Source: Octopus sinensis (taxonomy: Eukaryota). From it: a stretch of DNA of 64,000 nt. The stretch is from NCBI RefSeq assembly GCF_006345805.1, contig NC_042997.1, forward strand, positions 210,428,001 to 210,492,000. The letters are read 5' to 3'. Shown piece by piece: positions 3,100 through 33,931 of the stretch. The number at the start of each line of letters is the position of its first letter. The stretch's first letter is position 1. The translations under genes were made by a program, and so were the position numbers. The notes beneath the pieces are model-generated. The model was given only the letters and a program-made list of their open reading frames with translations, was not told the DNA's origin and ran no database searches.

Positions 3100-3622
3100 A
3101 AATGTCAAGCGCTGAATACAGCCCCAGGCTAAAGAAGGTCTTCACCCATATAAGGTGTTGTTACCTGTTTGGTGAGATATGAAAGGTTTAGTCCACTTTG
3201 AACTTTTAAACCCAAACCAAATGATAATAAAGAAGATCTACTGTGAGCAGTTTGAGCGGCTTAAGTCAGCGCTAGAAGGAACACAACCATCTTTGGTTTC
3301 AAGACGAAAGGTGTTCTTCCATCAGGATAATGTTTGGCCACATACAGTGATGATAATATTCCAAAGTCTGGAGCAGATTGAATGGGAAACGATGCCCCAT
3401 CCAACATATTCGCTGGACATTGCACCATCTGATTATCATTTATTCCACAGATACCAAAATCATTTATACAGAAACAATATGAATTCTGTAGATGAGATCA
3501 GAACAGTACTGGAGGAGTATTTTTCATCACAGACAAGCAAATTTTGGAAGCGGAGCCTTGCAAATCTACCAGATAAATGGAAGAGCATTGTGGAAAATGA
3601 GGGAGAGTATATTTTAGATTAA
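3100..3622 (+). mobile_element. Mariner (DD34D) transposase remnant, 3' half
   Basis: ORF 3179-3622 has HQDN..PH and PHPTYSLDIAPSDYHLF with 34 residues between the two Asp. The upstream LHP.KVLL.VW* motif is broken by a stop. No TIRs recognised. Confidence 0.9.
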
Positions 3623-5880: not shown

Positions 5881-7759
5881 AGTAGGATCTGAAAATCATA
5901 CAACAATCGCAGGCAAATTGCAGCTTGCTGGACCTTCTGAATAGCTTGGATAACAACCAAATTACTTTGGATTTTGTTTAGCAGTGTGACCTGCTTGATG
6001 ATGAGTCGTATCTCATGTGGCCCATTATTTCTCAAAAAAGGTTCCCATTCCTGACATACAACTTATTTCAAGTGGAATTGGATCTCAACACTTGTTTAAT
6101 ATTTGGGGAAGTTACGAACTATACAAAGCTGAGAGGACTCTTTTGAAAAAAGTACATCTGAAAGTCTGACAAATATTGTGAACATGTAGGGATTTTTAAT
6201 TAATATGAGACTTGTTTAGGTGTGGTCAAGAAGTTTTCTTCACATCCAGCTGGCTTCAGGTTCGGTTCCAATGTGTGGTACCTTGGGTAACCCTGGGCTA
6301 ACCAATCCTGTGTAACTATGTGGAAATTTGTAGTATATTTATCTGTCTGTCTTTACGCACACACACGTTTGTGTGTGTGTGTGCGTTGTCACCTTATCGT
6401 TTGACAACCGGTGTAAGTTTGTTTACGTTCTCAAAACTTAACACTTTGATCAAATAAGCATGACTCTTAAAACAAGCCCTGGGACGATTTGTTCCACTAA
6501 CTACTTCGAAGCAGTACCTCAGTATGGCCGTAGTCCCAGGGAGAAATCCTGCTCCGTTGCTCCAACTTCAGAGTGTTTCACTAATAAATACCGTTTCAGG
6601 TTCCGTCACAAAGATTTTTAAATATTCAAAATTCCGGTGATTCTGAAACTACGTTACGATCTTTAGACAGAACCGTTCTTCTGCCTTTTTTTCTTTCTTT
6701 TTGTGAGTAATTAAGGAAACAGTGAGAAAGCACCTGGCAATATATATTTTATATGAATCATCAGTAAATAACTCCCAACAGGATGTAAAGACATTGTGAA
6801 CATTTTAAATATTTTCAATAATGTCTTAATTTATTTGGAACATCGCCGAAACAGTCCTTAAAACCCACGGCAAATGAAAAATTATGTATAATAAACTAAT
6901 TATCCTAAAATTATCGACAGCAATCATAAATCCACAAAACTAATTAAAGACATTTTATTGCAAAGAAATAATTAATGTGTCCGTTTTAGTCAAAAGATGA
7001 TTAATTAGGTCGGAACATTTTCCGATAATTCACAAATAATTCGTAACGCTAAGTGAATCCTGATCCTGTCGAGCTCTACACAAAGACATTCCACCTATGA
7101 CCATCCAGTTAGAGGTTTACATAATCCAAGGTCTTAGTATGTTTCAAACTACTTAGATCTTCCCTCGGTGGGTTTAATTAGTTTTAGTGTCTGCCTCTTA
7201 TAATTAAATTTATTCCAGGAAATAAATATTTCACTATCTCCGAGGATGTTGTTGAATATATTTATTTATATACATACCTTGTGTATATATTGTATTTCAA
7301 ATAGGAAACAGCTGGGATCCACCCTGCCGACCTATATAATCTATATACGCCAAATATATACGGCGTATATATTTAATCTTCTTTAATTATAAACTAGAGA
7401 CTCTCCACTCGTAACAAATAATAATAATGAGGCCGATGTGTGTTTGTGTGTATATATTTCTGTCCAGAAACGATCCCAGGCATCAGCCTCTCTCTCTCTC
7501 TATCCGTCCATCCACCCCTTTTGTGATGCGGGTGTGTTCTGTCAAAAACCAGCGGAACAACACGAAACACGTCAGCAAAATGGCATTTCCTGTATTTCAT
7601 TAACGATAATCGTTTAGAAACGGGAATAAAACTGGGCGAGAAGCAACAAAAATCCTTTCGGTTAAAATCAAATGAAGAACCAAAAAAAATTGTCTCCGAT
7701 GCAAAAATTTTTAAACTAATTCAATTTATATATTATTTTTGATGGCCGTTACTATAGTT

Positions 7760-7832
7760 GCCTCCATAGCTCAGTGGTTAGAGCACTGGTCTTGTAAACC
7801 AGGGGTCGTGAGTTCGATCCTCACTGGGGGCT
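7760..7832 (+). tRNA. tRNA-Thr-TGT: tRNA-Thr(UGU)
   Basis: GCCTCCATAGCTCAGTGGTTAGAGCACTGGTCTTGTAAACCAGGGGTCGTGAGTTCGATCCTCACTGGGGGCT, 73 nt. Full cloverleaf with anticodon arm CTGGT-CT[TGT]AA-ACCAG, A and B boxes, and a T6 terminator at 7844-7849. Confidence 0.97.
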
Positions 7833-8051
7833 TCTGTTACACATTTTTTGCTTTAATTTATAATTTCGATGTTATTTTTTCGATATTTTTTTCTTCACTT
7901 TATTCTTCGTTATTTTGTTTTCCATTTCACAACAGAATCCTTACGTGCCATCTCCGTCATAACAAATTACTTGAACAATATGAGAATTAGCTTAAAAATG
8001 CTGTCACATATTTATAATAACGAAATAGAAAAATAATAGGAAAAAAAAAAC

Positions 8052-11000
8052 AGGCTCCAGGGGGATTCGAACCCTCGACCTCCAGTTTACTAGACTGGCG
8101 CTCTAACCATCTGAGCTATGGAGCCTCACGTTAAGCTATTTTTTAAAAATAGCTATAATTGCCAATAGATATAAAATGAAAAAAGTTGTAAATAGTGACA
8201 AAAAGGCTCCAGGGGGATTCGAACCCTCGACCTCCAGTTTACTAGACTGGCGCTCTAACCATCTGAGCTATGGAGCCTCACGTTAAGCTATATTTTAAAA
8301 ATAGCTATAATTGCCAATAGATATAAAATGAAAAAAGTTGTAAATAGTGACAAAAAGGCTCCAGGGGGATTCGAACCCTCGACCTCCAGTTTACTAGACT
8401 GGCGCTCTAACCATCTGAGCTATGGAGCCTCACGTTAAGCTATTTTTTAAAAATAGCTATAATTGCCAATAGATATAAAATGAAAAAAGTTGTAAATAGT
8501 GACAAAAAGGCTCCAGGGGGATTCGAACCCTCGACCTCCAGTTTACTAGACTGGCGCTCTAACCATCTGAGCTATGGAGCCTCACGTTAAGCTATTTTTT
8601 AAAAATAGCTATAATTGCCAATAGATATAAAATGAAAAAAGTGTAAATAGTGACAAAAAGGCTCCAGGGGGATTCGAACCCTCGACCTCCAGTTTACTAG
8701 ACTGGCGCTCTAACCATCTGAGCTATGGAGCCTCACGTTAAGCTATTTTTTAAAAATAGCTATAATTGCCAATAGATATAAAATGAAAAAAGTTGTAAAT
8801 AGTGACAAAAAGGCTCCAGGGGGATTCGAACCCTCGACCTCCAGTTTACTAGACTGGCGCTCTAACCATCTGAGCTATGGAGCCTCACGTTAAGCTATAT
8901 TTTAAAAATAGCTATAATTGCCAATAGATATAAAATGAAAAAAGTTGTAAATAGTGACAAAAAGGCTCCAGGGGGATTCGAACCCTCGACCTCCAGTTTA
9001 CTAGACTGGCGCTCTAACCATCTGAGCTATGGAGCCTCACGTTAAGCTTTTTAAAAATAGCTATAATTGCCAATAGATATAAAATGAAAAAAGTTGTAAA
9101 TAGTGACAAAAAGGCTCCAGGGGGATTCGAACCCTCGACCTCCAGTTTACTAGACTGGCGCTCTAACCATCTGAGCTATGGAGCCTCACGTTAAGCTATT
9201 TTTTAAAAATAGCTATAATTGCCAATAGATATAAAATGAAAAAAGTTGTAAACAGTGACAAAAAGGCTCCAGGGGGATTCGAACCCTCGACCTCCAGTTT
9301 ACTAGACTGGCGCTCTAACCATCTGAGCTATGGAGCCTCACGTTAAGCTATATTTTAAAAATAGCTATAATTGCCAATAGATATAAAATGAAAAAAGTTG
9401 TAAATAGTGACAAAAAGGCTCCAGGGGGATTCGAACCCTCGACCTCCAGTTTACTAGACTGGCGCTCTAACCATCTGAGCTATGGAGCCTCACGTTAAGC
9501 TATTTTTTAAAAATAGCTATAATTGCCAATAGATATAAAATGAAAAAAGTTGTAAATAGTGACAAAAAGGCTCCAGGGGGATTCGAACCCTCAACCTCCA
9601 GTTTACTAGACTGGCGCTCTAACCATCTGAGCTATGGAGCCTCACGTTAAGCTATTTTTTAAAAATAGCTATAATTGCCAATAGATATAAAATGAAAAAA
9701 GTTGTAAATAGTGACAAAAAGGCTCCAGGGGGATTCGAACCCTCGACCTCCAGTTTACTAGACTGGCGCTCTAACCATCTGAGCTATGGAGCCTCGCGTT
9801 AAGCTATTTTTTAAAAATAACTATAATTGCCAATAGATATAAAATGAAAAAAGTTGTAAATAGTGACAAAAAGGCTCCAGGGGGATTCGAACCCTCGACC
9901 TCCAGTTTACTAGACTGGCGCTCTAACCATCTGAGCTACGGAGCCTCACGTTAAGCTATTTTTTAAAAATAGCTATAATTGCCAATAGATATAAAATGAA
10001 AAAAGTTGTAAATAGTGACAAAAAGGCTCCAGGGGGATTCGAACCCTCGACCTCCAGTTTACTAGACTGGCGCTCTAACCATCTGAGCTATGGAGCCTCG
10101 CGTTAAGCTATTTTTTAAAAATAGCTATAATTGCCAATAGATATAAAATGAAAAAAGTTGTAAATAGTGACAAAAAGGCTCCAGGGGGATTCGAACCCTC
10201 GACCTCCAGTTTACTAGACTGGCGCTCTAACCATCTGAGCTATGGAGCCTCGCGTTAAGCTATTTTTTAAAAATAGCTATAATTGCCAATAGATATAAAA
10301 TGAAAAAAGTTGTAAATAGTGACAAAAAGGCTCCAGGGGGATTCGAACCCTCGACCTCCAGTTTACTAGACTGGCGCTCTAACCATCTGAGCTATGGAGC
10401 CTCGCGTTAAGCTATTTTTTAAAAATAGCTATAATTGCCAATAGATATAAAATGAAAAAAAGTTGTAAATAGTGACAAAAAGGCTCCAGGGGGATTCGAA
10501 CCCTCGACCTCCAGTTTACTAGACTGGCGCTCTAACCATCTGAGCTATGGAGCCTCACGTTAAGCTATTTTTTAAAAATAGCTATAATTGCCAATAGATA
10601 TAAAATGAAAAAAGTTGTAAATAGTGACAAAAAGGCTCCAGGGGGATTCGAACCCTCGACCTCCAGTTTACTAGACTGGCGCTCTAACCATCTGAGCTAT
10701 GGAGCCTCGCGTTAAGCTATTTTTTAAAAATAGCTATAATTGCCATAGATATAAAATGAAAAAAGTTGTAAATAGTGACAAAAAGGCTCCAGGGGGATTC
10801 GAACCCTCGACCTCCAGTTTACTAGACTGGCGCTCTAACCATCTGAGCTATGGAGCCTCGCGTTAAGCTATTTTTTAAAATAGCTATAATTGCCAATAGA
10901 TATAAAATGAAAAAAGTTGTAAATAGTGACAAAAAGGCTCCAGGGGGATTCGAACCCTCGACCTCCAGTTTACTAGACTGGCGCTCTAACCATCTGAGCT

Positions 11001-12070
11001 ATGGAGCCCCACGTTAAGCTATTTTTTAAAAATAGCTATAATTGCCAATAGATATAAAATGAAAAAAGTTGTAAATAGTGACAAAAAGGCTCCAGGGGGA
11101 TTCGAACCCTCGACCTCCAGTTTACTAGACTGGCGCTCTAACCATCTGAGCTATGGAGCCTCACGTTAAGCTATTTTTTAAAATAGCTATAATTGCCAAT
11201 AGATATAAAATGAAAAAAGTTGTAAATAGTGACAAAAAGGCTCCAGGGGGATTCGAACCCTCGACCTCCAGTTTACTAGACTGGCGCTCTAACCATCTGA
11301 GCTATGGAGCCTCACGTTAAGCTATTTTTTAAAAATAGCTATAATTGCCAATAGATATAAAATGAAAAAAGTTGTAAATAGTGACAAAAAGGCTCCAGGG
11401 GGATTCGAACCCTCGACCTCCAGTTACTAGACTGGCGCTCTAACCATCTGAGCTATGGAGCCTCACGTTAAGCTATTTTTTAAAAATAGCTATAATTGCC
11501 AATAGATATAAAATGAAAAAAGTTGTAAATAGTGACAAAAAGGCTCCAGGGGGATTCGAACCCTCGACCTCCAGTTTACTAGACTGGCGCTCTAACCATC
11601 TGAGCTATGGAGCCTCACGTTAAGCTATTTTTTAAAAATAGCTATAATTGCCAATAGATATAAAATGAAAAAAGTTGTAAATAGTGACAAAAAGGCTCCA
11701 GGGGGATTCGAACCCTCGACCTCCAGTTTACTAGACTGGCGCTCTAACCATCTGAGCTATGGAGCCTCACGTTAAGCTATTTTTTTAAATTAGCTATAAT
11801 TGCCAATAGATATAAAATGAAAAAAGTTGTAAATAGTGACAAAAAGGCTCCAGGGGGATTCGAACCCTCGACCTCCAGTTTACTAGACTGGCGCTCTAAC
11901 CATCTGAGCTATGGAGCCTCACGTTAAGTTATTTTTTTTAAATAGCTATAATTGCCAATAGATATAAAATGAAAAAAGTTGTAAATAGTGACAAAAAGGC
12001 TCCAGGGGGATTCGAACCCTCGACCTCCAGTTTACTAGACTGGCGCTCTAACCATCTGAGCTATGGAGCC
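8052..12070 (-). tRNA. tRNA-Thr-AGT: Tandem array of 27 tRNA-Thr(AGU) genes; unit 149-153 bp (mode 152) = 74-nt tRNA + ~78-nt spacer
   Basis: Reverse complement of each unit is GGCTCCATAGCTCAGATGGTTAGAGCGCCAGTCTAGTAAACTGGAGGTCGAGGGTTCGAATCCCCCTGGAGCCT, with anticodon arm CCAGT-CT[AGT]AA-ACTGG. Left coordinates counted: 8052, 8204, 8356, 8508, 8659, 8811, 8963, 9112, 9264, 9416, 9568, 9720, 9872, 10024, 10176, 10328, 10481, 10633, 10784, 10935, 11087, 11238, 11390, 11541, 11693, 11845, 11997. Confidence 0.96.
8200..8204 (-). terminator. Pol III oligo-T terminator at the 3' end of each array tRNA (copy 2 shown)
   Basis: The - strand reads ...GGAGCC TTTTT GTCACTATTTACAACTTTTTT after copies 2-27; copy 1 is followed by G and a run of at least 10 T. 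Confidence 0.8.
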
Positions 12071-13150: not shown

Positions 13151-13217
13151 TATATAATAATAATGAAATTATTGTATACAGTGCTCAGGTGCACCACAAC
13201 AAAAAATGTGTAACAAA

Positions 13218-13290
13218 AGCCCCCAGTGAGGATCGAACTCACGACCCCTGGTTTACAAGACCAGTGCTCTAACCACTGAGCTATGGAGGC
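13218..13290 (-). tRNA. tRNA-Thr-TGT: tRNA-Thr(UGU), identical to and inverted relative to 7760-7832
   Basis: Exact reverse complement of the 7760 gene. The 3' trailer GTTACACATTTTTTG is also shared. Confidence 0.97.
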
Positions 13291-15261
13291 AACTGTTCTA
13301 TAGGCGACTTTTACCGAATTGCTACGTTACAGGGACGTAAATAAACGAACACTAGATATCAAGCAGTCGTGAAGGAAATAGACACAAAGACACACAAACA
13401 CACACAGGGGGCCGGATTAAGACTCATAGAAACCCTAATCACTTAAAAGGTTTTGGTGACCCCCACCCCATATGTGTGTATTTATTTCAAATATAAACAA
13501 TCTTTATTTCTGGAAATCTTTCAACGAAACAAAGCTTAATAGTAAAATGGAAAGCACAGATTATTTTTGTTGAGGGGTGGGTAGGACAAAATTGATAAAT
13601 AGGATAAAATTAGAGATTTCCGATTTCTTGTTATTTTCTCCCTTCCTGTTCGCATTACATTGCAAGTATTCTATCATCCTTTTGTGCTGTTGCATCATCT
13701 TTGGGAGAGAAAAAAAATTGGTCAGCAGAGATGTTGTTGATATTGTTATTAAAGTTGGGAGAGTTTGGAACGTAGTCGGGTGACAGGCATTCTTTCTTAA
13801 AGAAAATTTTCCTCAACTTCGACCCGATTCTAATTGAGATTGCTAATAAAATGTCTCTTTTACTCTTTTACTTGTTTCAGTCATTTGACTGCGGCCATGC
13901 TGGAGCACCGCCTTTAATCGAGCAACTCGACCCCGGGACTTATTCTTTTGTAAGCCCAGTACTTATTCTATCGGTCTCTCTTTGCCGAACCGCTAAGTAA
14001 CGGGGACATAAAAACACCAGCATCGGTTGTCAAGCAACGCTAGGGGGACAAACACAGATACACAAACATGCATATATATATATATATACATATATACGAC
14101 GGGCTTCTTTCAGTTTCTACCAAATCCACTCACAAGGCTTTGGTCTGCCCGAGGCTATAGCAGAAGACATGAACCCGTAACCATGTGGTTGGTAAACAAG
14201 CTACTTACCACACAGCCACTCCTGCGCCTGGATATTTTTGTTTAATAATCAAGATTTTATTCTCTGTTGGATTCCAAGTCAATTTTGGATCTTTTCACTT
14301 TGACCGGCAGATTTTTTAAATAGTTTCTTTGTAACTAAACACTTTTAAACTTCGTATACTGGTAGAATGTCTCACATAAAACATCTTTTTCTCTTGGCTT
14401 TCTTGAAAAAATTCTGTAGTTTGTAGCATATTTGTTGTTTAATTTCTTGCATTTAGGCAATTTCAACCAATCAATGACGTCTATTGAGGTGAATACAATT
14501 TCTGCCGTAGTTTGACAATGTCTAATTTGATCATTTTTAATTTTCAAAAAAAAAGAAAAAGATGTCTAAAACGAGGTTTAAAATGAGTAATCACAGATTT
14601 TGATAATTACTTCTCCTTAACTGCATACATATGAAAGAGAACCACTTCAGCAGATCTGGAGGAAGTTAACGAGAATATTTTGTGTTGGGCTTTTCGATTT
14701 AAATGATGAGTTTCGCTAATTTCATATCACGTACCATTTTTCCGTGATCCTCTTTCATTTGACTTAAGATATTTAATATTTTTGTCGCGTTTCTCATCTT
14801 TTTGGTGTTTAAGGATGCATATTGATGTGCACGAGTCTGTTTTCAAATGTAATTCTGGAGAATTGAGGCAAATATATTTACCTTATCTCGTCTTACTCAT
14901 TCTACCGCAGCTAAATTTGTCAAAGAGACCAGAGATAACCTTCGGAAACACTGTTCCGAATATGTTATAAAGTTTTTAATGCCTTTAGAGAAGGTCCTTT
15001 GCTTTGCTAATATAGTTTAAATAAGGCTGTGAACATCCGTAAATAATATATTTTTCTCAGAGGCGGCGAGCTGGCAGAAACCTTAGCACGCCGGGCGAAA
15101 TGCTCAGCGGTATTTCGTCTGCCGTTACGTTCTGAGTTCAAATTCCGCCGAGGTCGACTTTGCCTTTCATCTTTTCGGGGTCTATAAATTAAGTACCAGT
15201 TACGCACTGGGGTCGATATAGTCGACTTAATCCGTTTGTCTGTGTTTAAATACATGGATAC

Positions 15262-19038: not shown

Positions 19039-22000
19039 ATGTCGGTGTTCAATATTTTCCCACTGAGCAATTCATTTGCCAGCTTTAATTGTGTCAACTG
19101 TCGCCTGTATGGCAGAAAGTGGGAACGGCGAAGTAAGTTCACTTTCCGGGGAGCAGAAGCGGAAGAGGTTAACCCGACGACTTTGACAATGGAAGTACCA
19201 AGACCATTAATTCCATGTAGGATTCTATGGTTAATCTCTTATTCAAAATTCTTTAACTCTTATTGAATGTTTAAATGAAGTCGTCCTAATTTTAATGCCC
19301 ACCTTCTCCTTTCTCTTTTCAAGCTGCCGATCCCGAATACCTGAGCAAGGTGTTCCGTGTCCTCCGCTTTGACTACATGCCAACCACTAATGCATCCCTA
19401 CACAACACATCTAAATTTTATTCCACTAATCAACAAGCTTTAATGATTCGTCGAGGTCTTCCGTTTAAGATAAAAATCACTTTTAATGAGAAGTATGATC
19501 CAGATATACACGAGGTGTCCTTCGTTCTCTTAGCAGGTAAGACAATTTCTTTTTAAAACATTTTTTGTATTTTTTTTTGTCTCTTGTTGCTGTTTAACTC
19601 GTGGTGGTCTCTGGTTTTTAATGAAAAAACATCCTAGCCATGGTTATCCCACCTTAGGTTTCATATAGGGCGGAGAGCTGGCAGAAACGTTAGCACGCCG
19701 GGCGAAATTCTTAGCGGTATTTCGTCTGCCGTTACGTTCTGAGTTCAAATTCCGCCGAGGTCGTCTTAGCCTTTCATCCTTTCGGGGTCGATTAAATAAG
19801 TACCAGTTACGCACTAGGGTCGATACAATCGACTTAATCCGTTTGTCTGTCCTTGTTTGTCCTCTCTGTGTTTAGCCCCTTGTGGGTAGTAAAGAAATAG
19901 GTATTTCGTCTGCCGTTACGTTCTGAGTTCAAATTCCGCCGAGGTCGACTTAGCCTTTCATCCTTTCGGGGTCGATTAAATAAGTACCAGTTACGCACTG
20001 TGGTCGATCTCGACTGCCCCTCCCCCAAAATTTCGGGCCTTGTGCCTAGATTAGAAAATACCTTAGGTTCCATATAATGTTTAAGACAGTAGGAAATGAT
20101 TTGGAAATTTGGCTGCTGTTTCTAGCAAGTCATGCAAGCGCCGAGAGCAGGGACGGAGAAACGTTTTAGTATCAGGGTTTCGTTGCCAGCACGAAGGAAT
20201 CTGAGGACGAGGGTGATGGGTTGCTTCCGTGCTGAAGGAAATTGTTCAATCTTTAATTTTACAAATTCCTAGTGTTAAGAACTTCTTGTTTTGGTGTGAA
20301 AGCTTGGAACTGGTTTTTCCTTTGAAATTTTTTTTTAAAGATTTCTCTGCAGGCGAAGGTTCCGCTACTCCAGACCTTACAGGTTCCTTGCTACTTCTAC
20401 ATGGATGCTGACACTGTACAGATATTTTACTATTTCGGTAACCAAGATGTAAAGTTAGTTTTTTTAAATTCCAGATTACAAACGTGACTGACGGTCATAT
20501 GTACTCTAACCCCTCACCCCCATTCCTTATATTTCATGTCCCTCAATGTATGTTTTTCCCCCCCAGTGAAAAACAGTCCTCAACTGCGGACGAAGTCTGC
20601 AAACGAAATATTTTGGTTGGCACCATTCCCCTTGTCTTTATTAAACCTCAGTAAATTGGAAAAGGTATTGCTATATCAGCTTCACGTTTCTCCTATTTTC
20701 AAAATTTAATTATAAAAAAGAGAATAAATGGAACTTGAACTTTACCAAACTTCGATCCCCCCCCCCAAAAAAAACCGTCTGCCGGCAAAGCTGTGTGGCT
20801 GAAATTTTGCTTTCAGGTTCCGTCCCACCCTGCTACACCCGGGGGTCGTCTCATTATAGGGAAATCGATGTACTCATTCTCTGAAGTGTTTACTTGACAT
20901 CAAACTGTACATAGATCAAAGCTGAGACCCCACCAAACTTGTGAGACCCCCGGGCAATTGCTCAGAGTGGCCCTTCATTAAGGAGGCACTGGTTTTACTT
21001 CGAGTGTCTTCTACACTCGAATCAGATCGATCGAAGCCTTGTGTGAGAGTTTGGAAACTGGAAAAACCATTGGCAGGATCATTCCGATAACCGAGTCTTT
21101 GTCCACCGGTTTTAACGCTGATATTACTTCGTCCTTCGCTGACAGTACTTTTTGATGCAAGAATTCAAAGCAGGTCACAGATCTGCAACCAGTGACGGAG
21201 ATCCTTAAAGCTCATAACCCCATCCTTCCTCTAAACAATAAGAATAGGTTAATGTTTTTATTTTTCCTCCAGACCAGGAGTCTCCAAACTACGGTCCGCG
21301 AGGTCAGTTCATCCGGCCCGCCGCCGCACTACCTGCAATGAGAGTTCATTTGCATCTGGTATGGCACTAGTGTTTGGAACAACTTATGTCTGAGCAAACA
21401 TTTTCAAAAATGTAGGATGTGAAGTCAGCACATCGAACGATGTTGACTGATAAACATTTGGAAGCAATTCTCTCGGCTGGATGAAGCAATTCCAAAGCAA
21501 ATATTGGTGATCTCTTAAAAAGCTAAACACACCAGTTTCACAATCTCACCAACCATTTTTGCTGCTTAGTTTGTGAGATTCAGATATATTTGCAGATATG
21601 GGTGTGATATAACTATCTTATTGCTAATGTCGCCTTCTCTGATAACTTTTTGCTAAATAAATATGTTGGTTGTCTTTATTTTTTGTGTATTCACTGCATT
21701 GTATGGAACAAAATGGTTATGCGGCCCACGATCATCATTCTCTCTGTTATCTGGCCCGCCATGGAAAATGTTTGGTGACCCCTGCTCAAGACCATCGTTG
21801 ATTAATATGTTTGGTGATCGATTCTTTGGCATAACTATAAAAGTATTACAACATAAAAACTTCTCAATCTTGTTCCGGTAAGGGAGGTTTAATGATTCTT
21901 TCAGAAGAGTTCTATAATTCCATTTATGACTGTTTTAAACGTTCGAAGCTTTTTTTTTTTTTTTTTTTTGTATAAAATGTTCATCAAACCCTTGTTTTGT

Positions 22001-25000
22001 AGGGGACAGGCCTGCTCCTGGTTTGGACACTCATGTCCATGTTGAGTTGAATGAAGGACCATTCGAAGACGAAGTGTGGTGGTGCAAGACGGAGGAAAAT
22101 AGCGAAACTGGATTGATTCTCAGCCTTCATCCACCAGCAAACTGTATCATCGGAGAATGGGATATTTTTGTGAAGACTTTGGCTCCAAGTGACGAAAGTG
22201 TGAATTACTATCTTTACGACCACAACTCTCCATTTTATGTTCTCTTTAACCCTTGGTGTGAAGGTAAGCCTAGATTTCCAATGAACAACTTGTATTACGG
22301 TTTTGTTCTCTGTTCAAGACAATGTCTATGCCCACATTTCTAACAAATTTGATTATCATCCATTTTTCAGTTTTCTACCCTAGAAAGGACCATATGTAAC
22401 ATTTTGATCATTTTCTGGTTTCGATATTGTTTCTCGATGTTAATATATTTAACGTGGCTTTTTCCTTTCTTATTCCGATGTTGATATATTTATGTTGAAA
22501 GCAGTGAACTGGCAGAACCGTTAGCAATCTGGGGGAAAATGCTTAGCGGCATTTCGCCAATCTTCATGTTCCACAGAGGTCGACTTGGCTTTTCACCCTT
22601 TCGGGGTCTGTAAAATAAGTAGCGGTTGAACAATGGGGCCGTTGTAATCAACTTGTCCCCAACCGGAAATTGTTAGCCTTGTGTCAAAATTTAGAACCTG
22701 TGTATTTGATGTTTATCGAAAGACTTTCTTGCAAACGTGAACTTCAACAGTTTAGGAATCTAGAAGGTGTGGCGTGGCTTGGTGGTTAGCATATCAGTTT
22801 GCGGGTCGTAAGATCGTGAGTTCAATTCCTGAATGTGCGTCGTCTTAGAGCAAAAAACTTAATTTACGTTGCTCCGGTCCACTCAGCTGGCAAAAATGAG
22901 TTGTACCTGTCATTCAAAGGGGGCCAGCCTTGTCACATTCTGTGTCACACTGGAACTGGGAACTGCGTTAAAGGAACGCGTGTCTGTGGAGTACTCAGCC
23001 ACTTGCACGAGAAGGCTGTTCCGTTGATCGGATCAACTGGAAGACTCATCGTCGCAAGTGACGGAGTGTCCGTTGGGATTCTAGAGCAAAATGCATATCA
23101 CGTGTTAATATTATTTTTGTTTCCTTATTACCCACAAGGGCCTAAACATAGAGGGGACAAACAAGGACAGACAAACGGATTAAGTCGATTATATCGACCC
23201 CAGTGCGTAACTAGTACTTAATTTATCGACCCCCGAAAGGATGAAAGGCAAAGTCGACCTCGGCGGAATTTGAACTCAGAACGTAGCGGCAGACGAAATA
23301 CCTATTTCTTTATTACCCACAAGGGGCTAAACATAGAGGGGACAAACAAGAACAGACAAACGGATTAAGTCGATTATATCGACCCCAGTGCGTAACTAGT
23401 ACTTAATTTATCGACCCCCGAAAGGATGAAAGGCAAAGTCGACCTCGGCGGAATTCGAACTCAGAACATAATGGCAGACGAAATACCGCTAAGCATTTCG
23501 CCCGGCGTGCTAACGTTTCTGCCAGCTCGCCACCTTCACGTGTTAATATATTTTTGTAAATGGAATTATAGGTACATAGGGTAAATGTAATAGATTGCCT
23601 TTCTTTGAAAATGTCTTTCTGCAGCTGACCAAGTGTATTTGGACAGCCCTGAGCTACTGAAGGACTACGTTCTAAACGAGTCGTTAACAATATTCGTTGG
23701 CACCAAAGAACAACTCAACTATAAACACTGGTACACAGGACAGGTAAGGCTTGGCCATGTTTCTAGGTGCAACTTGTCAGTGTGTGTGTGTGTGTGTACA
23801 CTTATATAGATACACACATGCATCTATGAGGAACGGTTAATGTGTCTCGTTAATTAAACCATTAGGCCATGTTCTGTTAAGATGCATGCTATCCCCGCCC
23901 CACACACGGACACACAAACAGACGCTCGTGCACACACGCCCTCCCATACACACATGGACACACGCATACTCATACACACGCGTAGATAGTCATCAATTTA
24001 TTCAAAAAACTGTTTAACTTTCTTTGAGAGAAACGTCATATGGATGAATGTATGCGTTTCTGAAGAAAACTGAAACCGCTGTATTATATACGAGCAGTAT
24101 CGACCGGCGTTGCTCGGGTTTGTAAGGGAAATAACTATATAAGCATTTTTAGAGTTACTTCCCTTATATAATAGCAAAAACATGAATTAAAAATGGGAAA
24201 AATTTATGGTAAATTTTTTTTTAAATCGTAGACATTTTTTGAGTTACTTCCCTTATATAATAGCAAAAAAATGCATTAAAAATGGGAAAAATTGATGGTA
24301 AATTTTTTTTTAAATCGTAGACTCATCGTAGACGCGCGCTAATACCCAGAAGGGCTCGATATGAATGACGACTATAAGATACCCGCTTTTGGTTACACTG
24401 CACCGCAAAATGTGGGAGTAGTTAGGAATCTAAATCGTAGGAGACAGACACCACACAACTTTTCTTTTATATATATATATATATATATAGATAGTTAGAT
24501 AGATATAAAAATGACATAAGTCAGTATTTAAAAAAACGCAACGCACACATATGAAGCACACACTTATAAACACACACACACACACACATTCAGACACACA
24601 TTCACATACTCATCTTGGACAACTCACAATGCTGGAACATAAGTTCAAAAGAAATAGAAAAAGAAATGGAAGAGATGTGTCACTGAAGAGATTGCAACAA
24701 TGCAATGAAATAATTGACAAAAAATACACAATACTGAACAATAACAGTAAAGGTCCGAACCAGTGCGTGTGTTTATTATTGTTGGTATAACGCCCCTCCC
24801 AAAGTTCAATAGAATTTATTTCGAAACGTATTCACATCAAGAATCTTGCAAACCAAATACAAATACTAATCATGTTCTGGTAATTGGTAATTATGCCGAC
24901 TTAGCTTCAAGTAGGGGCCTAGTTTCTGTCAGTTTTAGTTTATAGAATTTAGCATTTTTGAATTTCTTGTTTGTCATGAAGAACTCTGCCTATGGCTTTT

Positions 25001-25300
25001 GAAGGCCTTTCCAGATTGTTTAATCTGCTGTCAACCCTGATTCAGTAGACATGGACTCCCTATCGACCCTCCCATTCCTAACCAAGCGGGACACCGAGGG
25101 AGAGACGGCTGCACCGGAAGCAATCGGTTGGTGCACTTATTGACGAATAAAAGGATGTACCTAACCCAGACACAACACACCGCTCTGTCCAGGAATAGAA
25201 CTCTCGATCTCATGAACAGGAGCCTACCACCTTCACCATAAGGCCATATGCAGCATGGCAGAATTGTTAAGTTTGCTTCGCAATCCCGAAGCCCTGGGTT

Positions 25301-25365
<65 letters not shown>

Positions 25366-28300
25366 ATTGGCAGAAGTTCCAAAGCAGCTCAGTCTGAGAG
25401 TGTGCAAAGCATGTACACACATACATATACAAGATGGTCACTTAGAACTTGTCTGGTTCGTTTGTAAGAATAACAAAGAAAAAGTTCCAAAGTGTTTTGG
25501 AAGATTTCTGGGGAAGGATTGGTTTAAAGTTTCTACGGAATCGGTGTGCGTAATCCAAAGTTTATTATTTTCCAGTTTGATGATGGCGTCTTGGATTTGA
25601 CTCTGTACCTGCTTCGTAAAGCTTTCTCACTCGTAAATTCTTCATTCTCTAATCCTGTGACAGTCATAGAAGGCTTAAATCGAATGGTAAGTGCTTTTCT
25701 TAGTCTTTTTGTTTTTGTTAATGCGTAAACATAGATTGGACGATCTTTAACCCTTTAGTGTTCGCATTATTCTGCCAAAACTAATGTTTTTTTATCCACA
25801 TTGTTTTGAACTAATCATGCATTATCTTGTAGCTATGAGATTTTGATGAGGAAGCTGTTAATTTTTAAAATGACATTGTAGGGTTGGTGTGAGACACCAG
25901 ATCTGGCCAGTTTGAACATAAAACAGGCAGAATACTTTTGGCTGGATATGGCCAGTTTAAATACTAAAGGGTTAAGATTGTCTCAAGAGAGTAACAGTAA
26001 AATGTTTCAACAACAAAAGTATGAAGTTACAAATTAAATATTAATCGTTAACAGAAAAAAATGTTGCGACAGAAAGTATGTCGTGCAGGATGGGCGTCAA
26101 TGACAGTCACCGTCATTTAGAGGGCTGCAGTTGTTGTATCCATAGATTCCTGCAGCCATTGATCTTCGTTGTATCACAATCACTGATGCACCTTATATAT
26201 AAGCAAGGTATGTCAAAGAAAAGGCGAAATCGTTAATGAGATTTCAATTTGTAAAAAAGAAAAAAACTCCAACTCGAGGAGTCTGAGTGAGACATCTCTT
26301 GTGCTGGTCAAACTGCCAAATAACTTGAGCTTTCTTTTGACCAGAATTCAATGGATTAATTGCTTGCTGACATCATCAATCCTTGACACCATCCATTTTT
26401 ATTGTTTAGCTCTATTTTACGTCTGAACACAGTGATTCAGGTTCGATCCCTAGGCAGTGAGTTGGTGTTTAGGGCTCTGCCAATATGCCTACCACAACTT
26501 CGTGGATAAAGTGAAATTTTCTGAATAAAATCTTATCCTAACAAGAACATTTTGAAAATTGGTTAGAACAAGGTGGAATCAATTTTTACAGCTACAGACG
26601 GCTAAACTTAAAAGTAGGATGCATTGTTTTATGCGATATTTCCCGACTGCTTCATTGTTATATCCATTTAGGTTGCATATGACTCAAATGCTGTAATGTC
26701 CATTCATTGGTACCAATGCAACCCGGAAAGCAGACGTCCCACTGCTTGGAGTTCAAGTGTTGAAATTATACAGGAATATAAAAAGGGATTAGGAAAAGTA
26801 AAATATGGCTGTTGTTGGACGAATGCTGCTTTATTGACAACGTGTAAGTATTTCGTGCATTCCACTTAAGCAAATTTCAGTTCGTTTTAATATCTTCTGC
26901 GTGAAATAATTAACTTTTAATGTTAGATAATTAAATTTTGATTTCTTGATTGAAACAACTGGGTTATAGAATTTGTGCCAATAAGACAGTGAAATGTTAG
27001 CTGAAGAACCTGGGGTATTAGATAAAAGGATGCAATTGCTGTATTCCTTGGATATAAAGTAGTGGTGATTCAAAACATAACCACTAGATAACCAGTCAGA
27101 CACCACGACCGAACCACAATGGCTTCACATGATCAGTCTATTAAGCAACCAACCAGGGTGAAGCTGTTGCATAATTCAGTCTTCTAGAATTTTCCCCTTG
27201 TACCCTATAAAAGAGCTGCTTTTGGTGCCTCCCCTCTTTGCAGAATGTCGAGGCGGCTGAATGACATGTCTCTATTCTTGCCATGACCAGGAAGATGGCC
27301 AAGAACCTCCGTTGTCATGAACATAGCCCAGATGTTTTTATATATGTTGGGCAAACTGCATGTTGCCATCCCAATAGCTTTCTGCAATCTGAGAAAATAT
27401 TGCTCTCACATCATCATCATCATTTAGCATCCGCTTTCCATGCTAGCATGGGTTGGACGGTTCAACTGGGGTCTGTGAAACCAGAAGGCTGCATCAGGCC
27501 CAGTCTGATCTGGTAGTGTTTTTACGGCTGGATGCCCTTCCTAACGCCAACCACTCTGTGAGTGTAGTGGGTGCTTTTTACGTGCCACCCGCACAGGTGC
27601 CAGATGGAGCTGGCAAACGGCCACGGACGGATGGTGCTTTTTACGTGCCACTGGCACGGGGGCCAGGCAAGGCTGGCAACGGCCATGAACGGATGGTGCT
27701 TTTACGTGCCACCGGCACGGGGTCAGGCGAGGCTGGCAACGGTCACGAACGGATGGTGCTTTTTACGTGCCACTGGCACGGGGGCCAGGCGAAGCTGGCA
27801 ACAGCCACAGTCTGTTATTATTGCTGCTGTTAACAGTAAGAGGCCAACACAGTTTGTCTTTGTGATAAATTCTGTTAAATATTCATGGGTTTTGTTCAGT
27901 TACTTCTTCCTGCAGCAAAGAAACCTTTTCCTTTTAACTCAATCGGCAACCACAGCAGCATTGGCGAATCACAAACAACACACCTTATAACATTAGTGAC
28001 AAAACCAATAACACCTTTATGGAATCGGGGAAATGTTTGAAATGCACAGCTTGAATATTAGATTTGAAAAAAAGAAAAAAACAATATGGTGTAGGAGTGG
28101 CTGTGTGGTAAGTAGCTTGCTAACCAACCACATGGTTCTGGGTTCAGTCCCACTGCGTGGCATCTTGGGCAAGTGTCTTCTGCTATAGCCCCAGGCCGAC
28201 CAATGCCTTGTGAGTGGATTTGGTAGACGGAAACTGAAAGAAGCCTGTTGTATATATGTATATATATATGTTTGTGTGTGTGTGTTTGTCCCCCTAGCAT

Positions 28301-29899
28301 TGCTTGACAACCGAAGCTGGTGTGTTTACGTCCCCGTCACTTAGCGGTTTGGCAAAAGAGACCGATAGAATAAGTACTAGGCTTACAAAGAATAAGTCCT
28401 GGGGTCGATTTGCTCGACTAAAGGCGGTGCTCCAGCATGGCCGCAGTCAAATGACTGAAACGAGTAAAAGAGTAAAGAGTAAAAGAGGCTGAGAGAAATA
28501 ATGGAAGGCAAAATAAATATGAAAGAAAAGGATAAATCAAGAATTATGTGACTGGATAATATAAAAAAAATGGATATTCTTAGAATAGAAATGGCCATGG
28601 TCTTCAAACTATTGAAATTAGAACTTAACATGTTAGCTTCCCCACTTCCTGCTGGTAGGTCATGGTGGTATGGTAGCAAGTCCTGCATGACCCACCAGCA
28701 GGTCGTTTTTTACAATATCCTTCCTATGTGTTTTCTGAGAGCTGGAATGCTCCAATTACTTTGATTTATGCTTTTGCTACACTAAAAGAACAATTCTTTA
28801 TAGATTTTCAATATTAATTTTTTTTACGTTTTTCTTCTCATTTCACCATGGAATGAGGTAAAATAAAAGATTGAGAATTGAGAAAATTTTATTTGCCATT
28901 GAAGCAAAAAGAGTTCTTTAGGGAAAAATTGGTAGATTTTCCAACAGAAACAGAAGGGAATGAAAAATATTTAACTTGCCATGGAAACTAAAATAGTTCT
29001 TTTAGAAAAGATTTCAAGATCTTCCAATAGAAAATATCTCAAATTTTTAATTGACCACAGGTAGGTTGTGTGGTACCTAGGATGTGATTTGAACTAAGGT
29101 ACCTCATAACCCTCCGATGGGATGTGGGTATCCAACACTACCTATGTGATCCTTGCCTCACATATGGCATAGTGTAAAAATATTATGCCGCTCATGTCAA
29201 AATTAAGATATCGTATTGGGACCCTGGGATAAAATGTAAAATGAGGTTCAGGGGTCAGCATGTTAAAATACAAAAGGCCTTGGTCTTTCAAAGTGTTGAA
29301 AGCGGAACTTATTATTTTTATTAAGGTTGTATAATTCTGGTTATTTTGTAGTTACTAATCTTTGAAATACTACCAGACATTCACACACAGACATTGACTC
29401 AAACTATTTGACATTTTTGGTTAGTTTGCCGTGCTCTTGGAATTCCTGCTCGTGTGGTCACCTCTTTTAAATCGAATCATGATATCAACAGCAATAAAAT
29501 CAGTCACCATTATCTAACAATGATCAAGTCACTAAAACGACTGCCTCATCTCACCCATCAGTCAATCTGGTAAGTGTTGCTTTTTAAAATTTTTTGTTTT
29601 TCAGTATCTTAGTCATTATTTCTTTGTTGGTAGAACACAATATTAGGCAGGCTGTGTGTTTAGGCAAGAATGACACCTATAAATCTCCATATTTTTTATT
29701 ACTCGGACATACTCTTTTACTTGTTTCAGTCATTTGACTGCGGCCATGCTGGAGCACCGCCTTTAGTCGTGCAACTCAACCCCGGGACTTAATCTTTTTG
29801 TAAGCCCAGTACTTATTCTATCGGTCTCTTTTTGCCGAACCGCTAAGTGACGGGGACGTAAACAGACCAGCATCGGTTGTCAAGCAATGTTAAGGGTGT

Positions 29900-29940
<41 letters not shown>

Positions 29941-32900
29941 TATTTCACTTTACAAATGTCCAACAATTATTTGTATAAACTAACGGACAAGAGATAGTGA
30001 ATGGGGCAGTCTCCATTGCATTAAAATATTTTAGTTATTTATAAGGAGCCTGACTGGCTCCCGTGCCAGTGGCATGTAAAAAGCTCCATCCGAACGTGGC
30101 CGGCGCCAGTGTCACCTGACTGGCTCCTGTGCCGGTGGCACATAAAAGCACTACCCAAACATGATTGATCCCAACCCCCACCCAACCCCTGACTGGCTCC
30201 TGTGCTGGTGGCACGTAAAAAGACACCCACTACACTCTCGGAGTGGTTGGCATTAGGAAGGGCATCCAGCTGTAGAAACACTGCCAGATCAAGATTGGAG
30301 CCTGGTGCAGCCATCTGGCTTTCCAGATCTCAGTCAAACTGTCCAACCCATGCCAGCATGGAAAACAGATGTTAAATGATGATAATAATAGAAATCATTC
30401 ATGCTTATTAACGACAGAATAAGTAGACAAATGAGAACACCTTATCACAAAACTGGTTGCCAGTTCTGTTTCACACCTGAGATTTTGTTTGGGAGTTGAA
30501 AATACCAATCAAAATGTCTAGAATTCTTGTAGTATTAACAGGAAAACTCACAAAATCTACTTTTGAGTTTACCATTTATTTGGTTAACCCTTTTAATATT
30601 AACCTGGCTGAAACCACCTCTGGCTCTGTAGTACAAATGTCTTGTTTTCAAAAGTTTTGAATTAAAATCTTCCACCAAATCTTAGTCACAATTTAAGTTC
30701 CTAGCTTAATGATAATGAAGTTATTTTACTAAATTCTTTGTTATTAGAAAATTACTATTTGTAAATCTCACAATGAGAGATATTCAGCAACAGTACTTTG
30801 GAGTAAAGATTGTTTACCAACATAACATGGCAGTCCTGGTTTAGGATGAATGTGGCTGTAATTTAGCTCCAGGAGACAATCGTCTCCAGCTGGCTATAGG
30901 ACACGATTTGTGTCCTTATATTTTCGAAAATATAAGGCTACACATCGTGTTCAAAAATATGACACAGATCGTGTCCTATAGCCAGCTGGAGACCATGTCT
31001 TCTGGGGCTAAATTACAGCAACATTCGTCCTAAACCAGGACTGCCATGTTATGTTGGGAAACAATCTTAAATACAAATTCTTTATGTTTAAAATTAATTG
31101 AAAGAAACACAGAGCATCTTAACAGAAATATGGTAACAAAAGGGTTAAACACCAGCTCATCTGATTGGTCAAACCATGTTCTCATAGGCATTAATGCCTT
31201 TTATGGCACAGTAAATTTATTGTTGCTGGTCTTTTGCCTTTTATGGCAACAAAGTTAGTCTGGGGAAATTGGTGAAATGGTTGAACATTAGAAGATTGGC
31301 TGTAGTTCTTTCAAGCTCATAAAAATTGACTTTTGAAACGTCTTATCTACTCAAAGCATTATTCTTTAAATTGCAGACAATTTTACACAGGTATTCTTGC
31401 ACAGGATGATGCCAAAATTTGTCAGAATTCACTTCTATATAGATAAATAGATACAGAACATTCCATCCTTGTAATACAATTTAATTTCTCGCATGTGGTC
31501 TGTTTTTTGGCAATAGCCTTGGAATGGTTCATGCTTTTTACTCAATAACTTTCCCATTCTTTTAGCCATGTTTTGGTGTAGACCAGGGCTGGCCAACTTG
31601 CGGCCTGCAGACCACATGTGGCCCACTTGCGGCCTGCAGACCACATGTGGCCCACTTGCGGCCTGCAGACCACATGTGGCCCACTTGCGACCTGCATACC
31701 ACATGTGGCCCACTTGCGGCCTGCAGACCACATGTGGCCAACTTGGGGCCTGCAGACCACATGTGGCCCGTTCTCTTGAAATGAGTTTATATAAACAAAC
31801 ATTTAAAAAATGTTATCAAACATTAAAGATTGTAATGAAAAGTAAAAAAGAAAGATACTAAATGGCGGTGCCCCAGCATGGCCACAGCTTGTGAGCTGAA
31901 ACTAGATAAAATAAAATAAAATACTGTTTTTGCAACAATAATATTTTGTGTTGAATCAACGATTATTCATTAATTATTGTAATTAATAAGCACGAGAAAG
32001 CAAAATGCTTTCAATTCTGTCAGTATATAAGCATCCCTCACAACTTTCTTTAATTAAAGTGGCCCTTAATGTAATTGGAGTTGGCCAGGCCTGGTGTAGA
32101 CAGTCTACTCGTACAATTGTCATGTGAGCATTCATTACTGAACATTCGTTAGTTTGAGACATTTTTAAATATCACTGAATTTAATGTTAATATTTGACAA
32201 TCTCAGAAGTAATCCAATCTGTATTTCTGCTTCAGGAATTTTCATGTATGGATGGATGCATGGACACTCAGGCCGGATCTGCCATCTGGTCATGGTTGGC
32301 ATGCTGTAGAGCCAACACCTAAAAAACTGGAATTTGGTAATTTTTGAAATTTTGAAGATTGCATTTCTAAATATCAACTGAACGTGAATTTCTTGTGACA
32401 TCTTGTCCTTAAATAATTTAACACGGAAAAATAATTTAATGGCGATGGTGACTTAGAAAAAAAAATTCAAGATTGTAAAATAGAAACGAATGTTGAAATC
32501 TTGAAGGGTCACCAAATAAGGTATCACAAAATGGGAATTCACAAGAGTCTCTGGTTATGATGTGGTTGTTGGATGATGCGGATAACATTCTTTGTCACAT
32601 GACTTTCAAAAGATGGAGTTGAGAGAAAATTTCACTGTAGATTAACATGAAGTTCAAATATAAGGTCATCCCATAAGTTCTGTCTGAATTTTGAATAAAG
32701 AAAACAAGAAATCAAATGTTATATTTAATTGAAATTTAATCATCAAAGTACTTTCCCTGATTATCTATGACTTCCTTCCATCTATTTACAAGCTTTTTAA
32801 TCCCATAAATGTAAAACTCTTTTGGTTTCAAAGCGAAGAACTCTGAAATGTCAGTTTCGACCTCCACCTGGCTTGCGAAAGTTATGTCCCCCAAATGATT

Positions 32901-33931
32901 CTGTAAACTACGAAACAAATGGTAGTCTGAAGGAGCAAGGTCGGGAGAATAAGGTGGATGAGGAATTTTTTCCCAACCAAGCTCTTTGATCTTCTGTGAG
33001 GTGATCTTTGCAGCATGGGTTTGCATGTTGTCCTGGTAAAACATCAATCCTTTTCAGTTCACTAAAGCGGGTCTTTTTTCTTCAAAGTTTGGTTCAAACA
33101 CTCTAATTGCTGACAGCAGACTTGAGCATTGATTGTTGCATTAGGTGGTAACAATTCTAAGTGAATTACTCCTTTGCAATCCCACCAGATAGAGAGAAGA
33201 ACCTTTTTCCCCAAGTAGTTCCTTTCTCAGTTGTGGTTGAGCTTTTTCCTTTTTACCAATCCACTGTTTACGACATTTAACATTTTGAAAGAAGATCCAT
33301 TTTTCATCACAAGTCTATCCAAAAAGGGTGAAATGAGTTTGCGAGAATGGAGAGAAGAGCAGATGTCAACTCAGGATTTGTGGTTGCTTTTGGACAATTC
33401 ATGAAACACCCATTTTCCAAGTTTAGGGACCTTTCCAAGTTGTTGAAGATGACGATGAACAGTTGTATGGTTTGAACTAAGCTTTATTGCCAATTCTTCC
33501 ACTGATAATGCAGGATTTTCTTCAAGCAATGCCTCAAGGAGCTTATCATCAAACTCAACTGGATGTCCTGTTCAATCTTCATCTTCAAGGCTGAAATCTC
33601 CACTTCTGAATTTTGCAAACCATCTTCTGCAAGTTCTTTCATTCAAGCATTCTTTCCCATAAACTGAGTGTATGTTTCAAGTCGCTTCGGCTGCAGAGTT
33701 TCCTTTTTTTGTACTCATAAAGCATTAAATGCTATTTGGATACTTCCATGTTAGAAACGGTTTTAATCAAAGAAATTTTAATTCTATTATTCTGTAAAAT
33801 AATATTTAATTAGTTTAAATGTACACAAATGCATAAAAATAATTTTTAATTCCATTAGACATTCTAAAATACTATTAAATTTCATTCAATTTTAAAAAAG
33901 GTAAAATCAGACAGAACTTATGGGATATATA

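Follow-up and report, generated by a model that had tools for sequence, protein, structure and literature searches.

Tandem arrays of genes for transfer RNA (tRNA) have already been described in Entamoeba (PMC2652664), in Hydractinia and Nematostella (PMC11067881), in zebrafish and Xenopus (PMC2888827; PMC11417395), in Arabidopsis (PMC10701932; PMC2886086) and at human 1q23.3 (PMC4041453). The authors of the Hydractinia study call such arrays unusual in animals (PMC11067881). Here, we describe a tRNA gene array in a 64,000-nucleotide stretch of the Octopus sinensis genome (assembly GCF_006345805.1, contig NC_042997.1, positions 210,428,001 to 210,492,000 of the forward strand), which is referred to as the window and whose own numbering is used throughout. 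On the minus strand, between positions 8052 and 12070, 27 tRNA-Thr(AGT) genes and 26 spacers follow one another with a period of 152 bp over ~4.0 kb. A literature search of incomplete coverage yielded no description of nuclear tRNA arrays in cephalopods or other molluscs but only mitochondrial or unrelated reports, and in the octopus genome papers that were checked, tRNA genes are mentioned only as tRNAscan-SE in the methods.

The array was recovered by three tools as well as by unit dissection. ARAGORN called 27 tRNA genes between positions 8051 and 12071 on the minus strand, 26 of them with the anticodon AGT and one reported as “tRNA-???”. Tandem Repeats Finder returned a single array at 8048-12070 (period 152, 26.5 copies, 98% matches), and the Rfam family RF00005 gave 27 full-length matches from 8052 to 12070, scoring 68.1 bits in 25 cases, 64.8 bits in one and 58.9 bits in one, at a gathering score of 29. 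An earlier, sequence-only reading of this DNA had reported 27 head-to-tail units of ~152 bp at 8052-12070, and both the count and the period agree with these results, the ends of the Rfam matches coinciding exactly with the reported coordinates. Against an expectation of 0, the window contains 25 occurrences of the spacer motif, which is confined to the array; a chance array can therefore be dismissed. Apart from the 27 array genes, the only tRNA genes in the window are two tRNA-Thr(TGT) genes. The locus is almost certainly a genuine local tandem array of complete, nuclear tRNA-Thr(AGU) genes of the RNA polymerase III (Pol III) type: it consists of head-to-tail units with one complete tRNA gene each, near-identical spacers and tens of copies, the number of copies being that of a single assembly. 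The concept of a single-isoacceptor amplification of complete tRNA genes is upheld by all three tools and by the Pol III signals described below. The label “satellite,” however, was an overstatement. Satellite DNA extends over tens of kb to Mb and as a rule occupies heterochromatin or numerous loci, whereas the present locus measures 4.0 kb, is bordered by unique sequence on both sides and has a unit of which neither the spacer nor the whole 152 bp recurs in the other 60 kb of the window.

Compared to the known arrays, the octopus array differs in degree, as it combines one gene per unit and a single isodecoder with a spacer of only 78 nt, as opposed to hundreds to thousands of nt. The Hydractinia and Nematostella arrays are likewise metazoan and contain tens to hundreds of near-identical, evenly spaced tRNA copies with near-identical spacers, but in Hydractinia they cover all 20 amino acids and other small RNAs, whereas the octopus window holds one array of one isodecoder (PMC11067881). 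Entamoeba shares the head-to-tail units with complete tRNA genes that are homogenized within arrays. However, its units contain up to five different tRNA genes, sometimes accompanied by 5S RNA, with complex short tandem repeats between them, and amount to more than 10% of the genome (PMC2652664). The octopus array is 4 kb long and has single-gene units whose spacer is free of short tandem repeats; it is not of the Entamoeba type. The Arabidopsis arrays, comprising a 27-unit Ser-Tyr-Tyr array on chromosome 1 and clusters of tRNA-Cys and tRNA-Pro genes, resemble the octopus array in their intact A and B boxes and terminators and in copy-number changes by whole units (PMC10701932; PMC2886086). 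The tRNA-Cys cluster is similar also in its single isoacceptor and its short (0.4-kb) units. In contrast to the octopus array, in which 24 of 27 tRNA bodies are identical, these plant arrays have units of 0.4-1.5 kb and are reported to be silenced epigenetically and to accumulate substitutions. Zebrafish provides another animal example with very many clustered, parallel tRNA genes, mostly located on chromosome 4 (PMC11417395; PMC2888827), yet its clusters are very large and mostly heterogeneous, genes for unlike amino acids being adjacent (PMC2888827), while the octopus array is small and homogeneous. Finally, the human 1q23.3 locus is a tRNA-bearing tandem repeat of variable copy number (9-43 units) that was proposed to act as a boundary element (PMC4041453). 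Its unit is a GC-rich sequence of 7.3 kb with a CTCF site and less than 6% tRNA genes, whereas tRNA makes up 49% of the octopus unit, the remainder being an AT-rich spacer.

Dissection of the minus strand shows that each unit is composed of a 74-nt tRNA gene and the 78-nt spacer that follows it, with G+C contents of 57% and 22%, respectively. Unit 26 (8204-8277, minus strand; Rfam 68.1 bits) can serve as the representative tRNA-Thr(AGT) gene, as it carries the consensus body GGCTCCATAGCTCAGATGGTTAGAGCGCCAGTCTAGTAAACTGGAGGTCGAGGGTTCGAATCCCCCTGGAGCCT that is common to 24 of the 27 units. Its A box, TAGCTCAGATGG, spans tRNA positions 8-19. The internal promoter elements were compared with the consensus sequences TRGCNNAGTGG for the A box and GGTTCGANTCC for the B box. 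The B box GGTTCGAATCC, present in 27 copies within 4 kb, agrees fully with its consensus. The A box, TAGCTCAG-A-TGG, agrees except for an additional base in the D loop, so that the A and B boxes attributed to every unit in the earlier reading are indeed present. The 7-nt anticodon loop CUAGUAA (DNA CTAGTAA) presents A34-G35-U36 between U33 and a purine at position 37 in 26 of 27 copies. In eukaryotic tRNA-Thr(AGU), A34 is a substrate of ADAT2/3 and is deaminated to inosine, the anticodon being read as IGU. The discriminator base is T (U). All 27 copies contain an A50.C64 mismatch in the T stem, which was flagged by Rfam. In the D arm, the minimum-free-energy fold departs from the cloverleaf, which is often seen with tRNAs. 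The array tRNA and the neighboring tRNA-Thr(TGT) genes have 59 identical aligned positions.

The spacer is represented by the sequence at 8126-8203 (minus strand), which serves unit 26 as trailer and unit 27 as leader. Four T runs are found on its sense strand, at offsets 0, 20, 28, and 55. Accordingly, units 1-26 possess a primary T5 terminator that starts from the discriminator (8200-8204 in unit 26, minus strand), backed up by T6 at +20 (8179-8184 in unit 26, 20 nt downstream of the tRNA 3' end), T4 at +28 and T5 at +55. Unit 27 ends in a unique trailer without significant similarity to the spacer, a G followed by T10 (8041-8051, minus strand). With a T run 3' of all 27 genes, the proposal of an oligo-T terminator for each unit is confirmed. 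At 8134-8154, corresponding to positions -9 to -29 relative to the tRNA gene that follows, the AT-only palindrome AGCTATTTTTAAAAAATAGCT adjoins the motif TATAG. Going by the position of TFIIIB in Pol III promoters of tRNA genes in general, the palindrome and TATAG would be situated where TFIIIB with its TBP subunit is expected to bind. The leaders of the interior units end in either ...TTAACGTGA or ...TTAACGCGA, the two variants differing by T or C at position -3, while unit 1 has a unique leader ending in ...CGGTGTCAG.

The units are 98-100% alike, and the earlier impression that nearly all tRNA bodies are identical is borne out, the exceptions being units 5, 15, and 17. In unit 5 (11390-11462, minus strand), one A of the anticodon loop is missing, which leaves a gene of 73 nt with a 6-nt loop; this is the copy that ARAGORN listed as “tRNA-???” and that Rfam scored at 58.9 bits. 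It may be either an inactive gene or a run-length sequencing error, and the assertion that every cloverleaf is intact holds for the other 26 units only. In unit 15 (9872-9945, minus strand; Rfam 64.8 bits), an A7G substitution creates a G.U pair at the base of the acceptor stem. Unit 17 (9568-9641, minus strand) exhibits a C48T change in the variable loop, from CpG to TpG, and still reaches 68.1 bits in Rfam.

Variation in the spacers is more common. The 26 spacers represent 14 sequence variants, each within a few changes of the consensus, and the trailer of unit 27 constitutes a fifteenth sequence. Variant cells were identified at 3 of 1998 body positions and at 23 of 2028 spacer positions (Fisher P = 8e-5), making them ~8-fold rarer in the bodies; counted as mutational events, 3 in the bodies stand against 14 in the spacers (P = 0.013). 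Small indels account for 7 of the ~17 variant events, lie mostly in A or T runs and include the one disabling change. These indel variants, including that of unit 5, could be long-read errors. Among the CpGs in the tRNA bodies, 80 of 81 are intact. Column 151 of the spacer, position -3 relative to the tRNA, is C only in units 8, 9, 11, 12, 13, and 15 (permutation P = 0.002), a clustering that is expected from local spread by unequal exchange or gene conversion. Higher-order blocks of several units were sought across the array variants and none were found, the variants being clustered rather than periodic. In summary, there is moderate evidence that the tRNA bodies are constrained, and the contrast between bodies and spacers together with the clustered variant suggests constraint on the genes in combination with local homogenization. 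The T/C difference at column 151 (window positions 9794-10857) lies within a CpG (ACGCGA vs. ACGTGA); units have 4 CpGs, or 5 with the C variant. The majority T could have arisen by deamination of an ancestral CpG and have been spread subsequently by homogenization.

The anatomy of the array fits an expansion from a two-gene dimer. Both ends fall exactly at tRNA borders, with clean junctions to the unique flanking sequences, and no degenerate tRNA relics were found to flank the array. In shuffle tests, the spacer did not significantly resemble the sequence on either side of the array or that around the tRNA-Thr(TGT) genes. A derivation of the spacer from these present-day flanks was rejected, as the best alignment was beaten by 17 of 500 shuffles and represents a low-complexity AT match. 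A dimer origin is proposed because there are exactly 27 genes and 26 spacers, the ends are tRNA borders, the spacer is unlike the flanks and relics are lacking. In this model, unequal homologous recombination or replication slippage would have acted on two adjacent tRNA-Thr(AGT) genes separated by a 78-bp spacer, and the gene-spacer-gene dimer would have expanded to the present array. Ongoing unequal exchange or gene conversion would keep the units alike and pass variants on to neighboring units, while purifying selection would keep the tRNA bodies cleaner than the spacers. The amplification had been termed “recent,” but an older array kept uniform by concerted evolution fits equally well; the two scenarios are not separable because a spacer unlike the flanks and a clustered variant are both expected under continuing homogenization.

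Related sequences were sought by exact-match scans. The 42-nt tRNA core gave no match in metagenome contigs, and the 25-nt anticodon arm gave none in prokaryotic genome contigs. The anticodon arm did match seven eukaryote-like metagenome contigs with related tRNA-Thr(AGT) genes, and none of these seven contains a copy of the array or of its spacer. Two of them, OBLZ010056157.1 (L002; 190-337, minus strand) and OBLZ010092772.1 (L005; 301-450, plus strand), encode a tRNA-Thr(AGT) that is identical to the array tRNA at 72 of 74 positions and also has the A50.C64 mismatch, which is therefore not private to the array. These genes lack a following T run; instead, a degenerate sequence resembling initiator tRNA-Met begins within 2 nt and is succeeded by TTTTT. 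The element could be a dimeric tRNA transcription unit or similar to a short interspersed nuclear element (SINE). Because the tRNA-Thr(AGT) is present there without a terminator of its own and is fused to a Met-like remnant, the two contigs do not prove that A50.C64 is tolerated in a working tRNA. In a third contig, Ga0256844_10025380 (L007; 1-2063), three tRNA-Thr(AGT) genes with a perfect T stem (74.1 bits) are located in a 1544-bp tandem duplication. Their starts are 421 and 1123 bp apart, which makes this a looser, homogeneous tRNA-Thr(AGT) cluster.

Regarding function, we favor with moderate confidence the view that the octopus array is a transcription-competent, high-capacity source of one Thr isodecoder, probably used conditionally, for example in the germline, the oocyte or other high-demand cells, rather than constitutively. 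Transcription competence is preferred because the units are complete, the 152-bp period offers room for one complex and the tRNA bodies look constrained. Each unit would be self-contained, with A and B boxes for TFIIIC, a TATA-like palindrome for TFIIIB and a T5 terminator with three backups. Judged by the footprint of TFIIIC, TFIIIB, and Pol III that is known from other organisms, a period of 152 bp would leave just enough room for one such complex per unit. The tRNA product, after deamination of A34 to I34, would read ACU, ACC, and ACA. Conditional use is favored over constitutive use because zebrafish tRNAs from repetitive clusters are deposited maternally, later stages being supplied by isolated genes (PMC11417395). 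As arrays are silenced in Arabidopsis and linked to maternal supply in zebrafish, neither a higher dosage nor a boundary role should simply be assumed. The sequence of the window lends no support to either role put forward in the sequence-only reading, an increased Thr-tRNA dosage for Thr-rich secreted proteins or a Pol III/TFIIIC boundary upstream of the transglutaminase gene; maternal deposition is an option absent from that reading.

Several points weigh against the favored reading. The T stem of every copy contains the A.C mismatch. Clusters of tRNA genes in Arabidopsis are for the most part silenced despite intact promoters and terminators (PMC10701932). If only substitutions are considered, the contrast between bodies and spacers (2 vs. 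9) weakens to P = 0.066, and the AT-rich, run-rich spacers are intrinsically more mutable as well as more error-prone in sequencing. Finally, the copy number of 27 comes from one assembly only.

Part of this evidence can also be read to mean that the array is a neutral by-product of local unequal recombination which is epigenetically silenced, the genes being intact only as a result of youth or homogenization and the supply of tRNA-Thr(AGU) being left to dispersed genes. We regard this scenario as possible, though less probable than transcription competence. Roughly half of the human tRNA genes are reportedly silent. The Arabidopsis clusters illustrate that intact A and B boxes and terminators are compatible with silencing, only one boundary copy being weakly expressed (PMC10701932). 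At 98-100% identity between units there was little time for decay to show, the substitution-only contrast does not reach significance and the T-stem mismatch is shared by all copies. However, with all variants included, the bodies are ~8-fold cleaner than the spacers (P = 8e-5), and the 80 of 81 intact body CpGs argue against long germline methylation unless homogenization is fast. Moreover, the same mismatch-bearing isodecoder is present elsewhere, namely in the L002 and L005 contigs.

A more far-reaching version of the favored transcription-competent source must be considered doubtful. With one gene per 152 bp, which approximates the footprint of one Pol III complex and the length of one nucleosome, this is possibly the most tightly packed animal tRNA array yet described, and its 4 kb might be either entirely loaded with Pol III or entirely nucleosomal. 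The array would then represent a switchable, stage-specific (e.g., maternal) Thr(IGU) factory for the A50.C64 isodecoder, comparable to the oocyte-type 5S genes, and would form a strong boundary when loaded.

A primarily architectural role appears unlikely. Under this hypothesis, the B boxes would recruit TFIIIC and Pol III to establish a boundary between a transglutaminase gene and repeat-rich DNA, with tRNA output being secondary. In its favor, 27 exact B boxes are found within 4 kb and the transglutaminase gene starts ~7.3 kb away on the other strand. In yeast, however, one or two tRNA genes (tDNAs) suffice for barrier activity, so that a boundary role leaves the 27 copies unexplained. In addition, the tRNA bodies are cleaner over their whole length and not in the B box alone, which fits selection on the RNA. 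Barrier activity of tDNAs is on record (PMC11830863), and the human 1q23.3 tandem repeat of tRNA genes has been proposed as a boundary (PMC4041453); there, however, the argument is based on the conserved CTCF site in the 7.3-kb unit and not on the tRNA genes (PMC4041453).

It is very unlikely that the array is an artefact of assembly or sequencing, with far fewer units or a different number of units in the genome and with indel variants that reflect long-read errors. Repeats of 152 bp at 98-100% identity are hard to assemble, and the 7 small indels among the ~17 events, found mostly in A/T runs, include the disabling change in unit 5. On the other hand, the 14 spacer variants comprise substitutions that are private to single units as well as one substitution shared by six neighboring units, and the array joins the unique DNA cleanly at both ends. 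An internal structure that is ordered but not periodic, as given by these variants, would not result from collapse or looping in the assembly.

The least credible explanation, a tRNA-derived SINE or satellite that merely retains a tRNA-like head, could invoke the abundance of SINE-like and transposon repeats in this genome and the near-identical tRNA-Thr(AGT) of L002 and L005, fused to a tRNA-like remnant without a terminator in between, but it is contradicted by a complete 74-nt tRNA in each unit, which has a discriminator and a paired acceptor stem and is immediately followed by a terminator, by the lack of a tRNA-unrelated body, of a tail that is A-rich or resembles a long interspersed nuclear element and of target-site duplications, and by the strictly tandem copies, none of which is found in the rest of the 64-kb window.

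An active array would show how an animal can increase the amount of one tRNA isodecoder through local amplification, and it would provide a test case for the limits of packing of Pol III units and for the switching of repetitive tRNA loci as blocks (maternal vs. somatic). Because the leaders carry T or C at -3 and that of unit 1 is unique, expression could be traced to particular positions in the array, something that identical tRNA genes seldom permit. Should the array be silent, it would add a further case of clustered tRNA genes that are shut down, now in an animal. Either outcome bears on estimates of tRNA supply from gene copy number, in which the 27 genes would greatly exaggerate how well adapted ACU, ACC, and ACA codons appear. 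Overall, the interest of the locus is moderate and lies chiefly in its use as a test case for the packing and block regulation of Pol III genes.

The array is bracketed by the two tRNA-Thr(TGT) genes, which are identical copies (71.1 bits each in Rfam; both called by ARAGORN). One is located at 7760-7832 on the plus strand and is convergent with the array, whereas the other is located upstream of the array, at 13218-13290 on the same (minus) strand. They form the left and right arms, respectively, of an inverted repeat of 106 nt with 94% complementarity (7745-7850 and 13200-13305, 5349 nt apart). Array and bracketing pair together amount to a 5.5-kb cluster of 29 Thr tRNA genes. The similarity between the arms of the inverted repeat extends only ~15-18 nt past each tRNA-Thr(TGT) gene, and the two trailers have TNTGTTACACATTTTTTG in common. 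Weak Rfam matches on the strand opposite to the tRNA genes (Plastid-ycf2 and HPnc0260) scored far below the respective gathering scores and were rejected as tRNA-antisense or AT-rich chance matches.

The location of the array ~7 kb upstream of a transglutaminase gene, likewise noted in the sequence-only reading, is supported by a Transglut_N exon at ~19368-19547 (E = 2.3e-11). The gene region extends over 19296-32344 on the plus strand, and further exons with approximate borders were identified at 22023-22343, 26672-26866, 29412-29570, and 32213-32344, the first two of the five exons belonging to Transglut_N and the core exons being located further on. The joined core exons align to residues 253-363 of human TG2 (E = 7e-19) with the catalytic Cys and His retained. 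The catalytic core is nevertheless atypical in that the position of Asp358 is occupied by Glu (AVEPTPKK vs. ALDPTPQE), and in the active-site motif, YGCCWTNA stands in place of YGQCWVFA. Searches for homologous proteins with one transglutaminase exon or with the five joined exons returned no match, and a search for contigs encoding two open reading frames (ORFs) of the window found none on record.

The window as a whole is intron-rich and repeat-rich eukaryotic DNA with abundant short repeats and remnants of mariner-type transposases. The mariner/DDE-type remnants are found at 3179-3622 (plus strand) and 32736-33047 (minus strand), with Pfam matches to Transposase_1 (E = 4e-6) and DDE_3 (E = 4e-4). 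Short tandem arrays with periods of 62-67 bp are located at 27570-27808, 41370-41971, 59406-59589, and 61321-61498 and belong to one family (GGTGCTTTTTACGTGCCACC...GGCCAG...). Members of this family occur on both strands in up to 9.5 copies, and single relatives are found in many ORF translations (“GAFYVPPAQ...”). The family is probably an internal repeat carried by a SINE or a miniature inverted-repeat transposable element.

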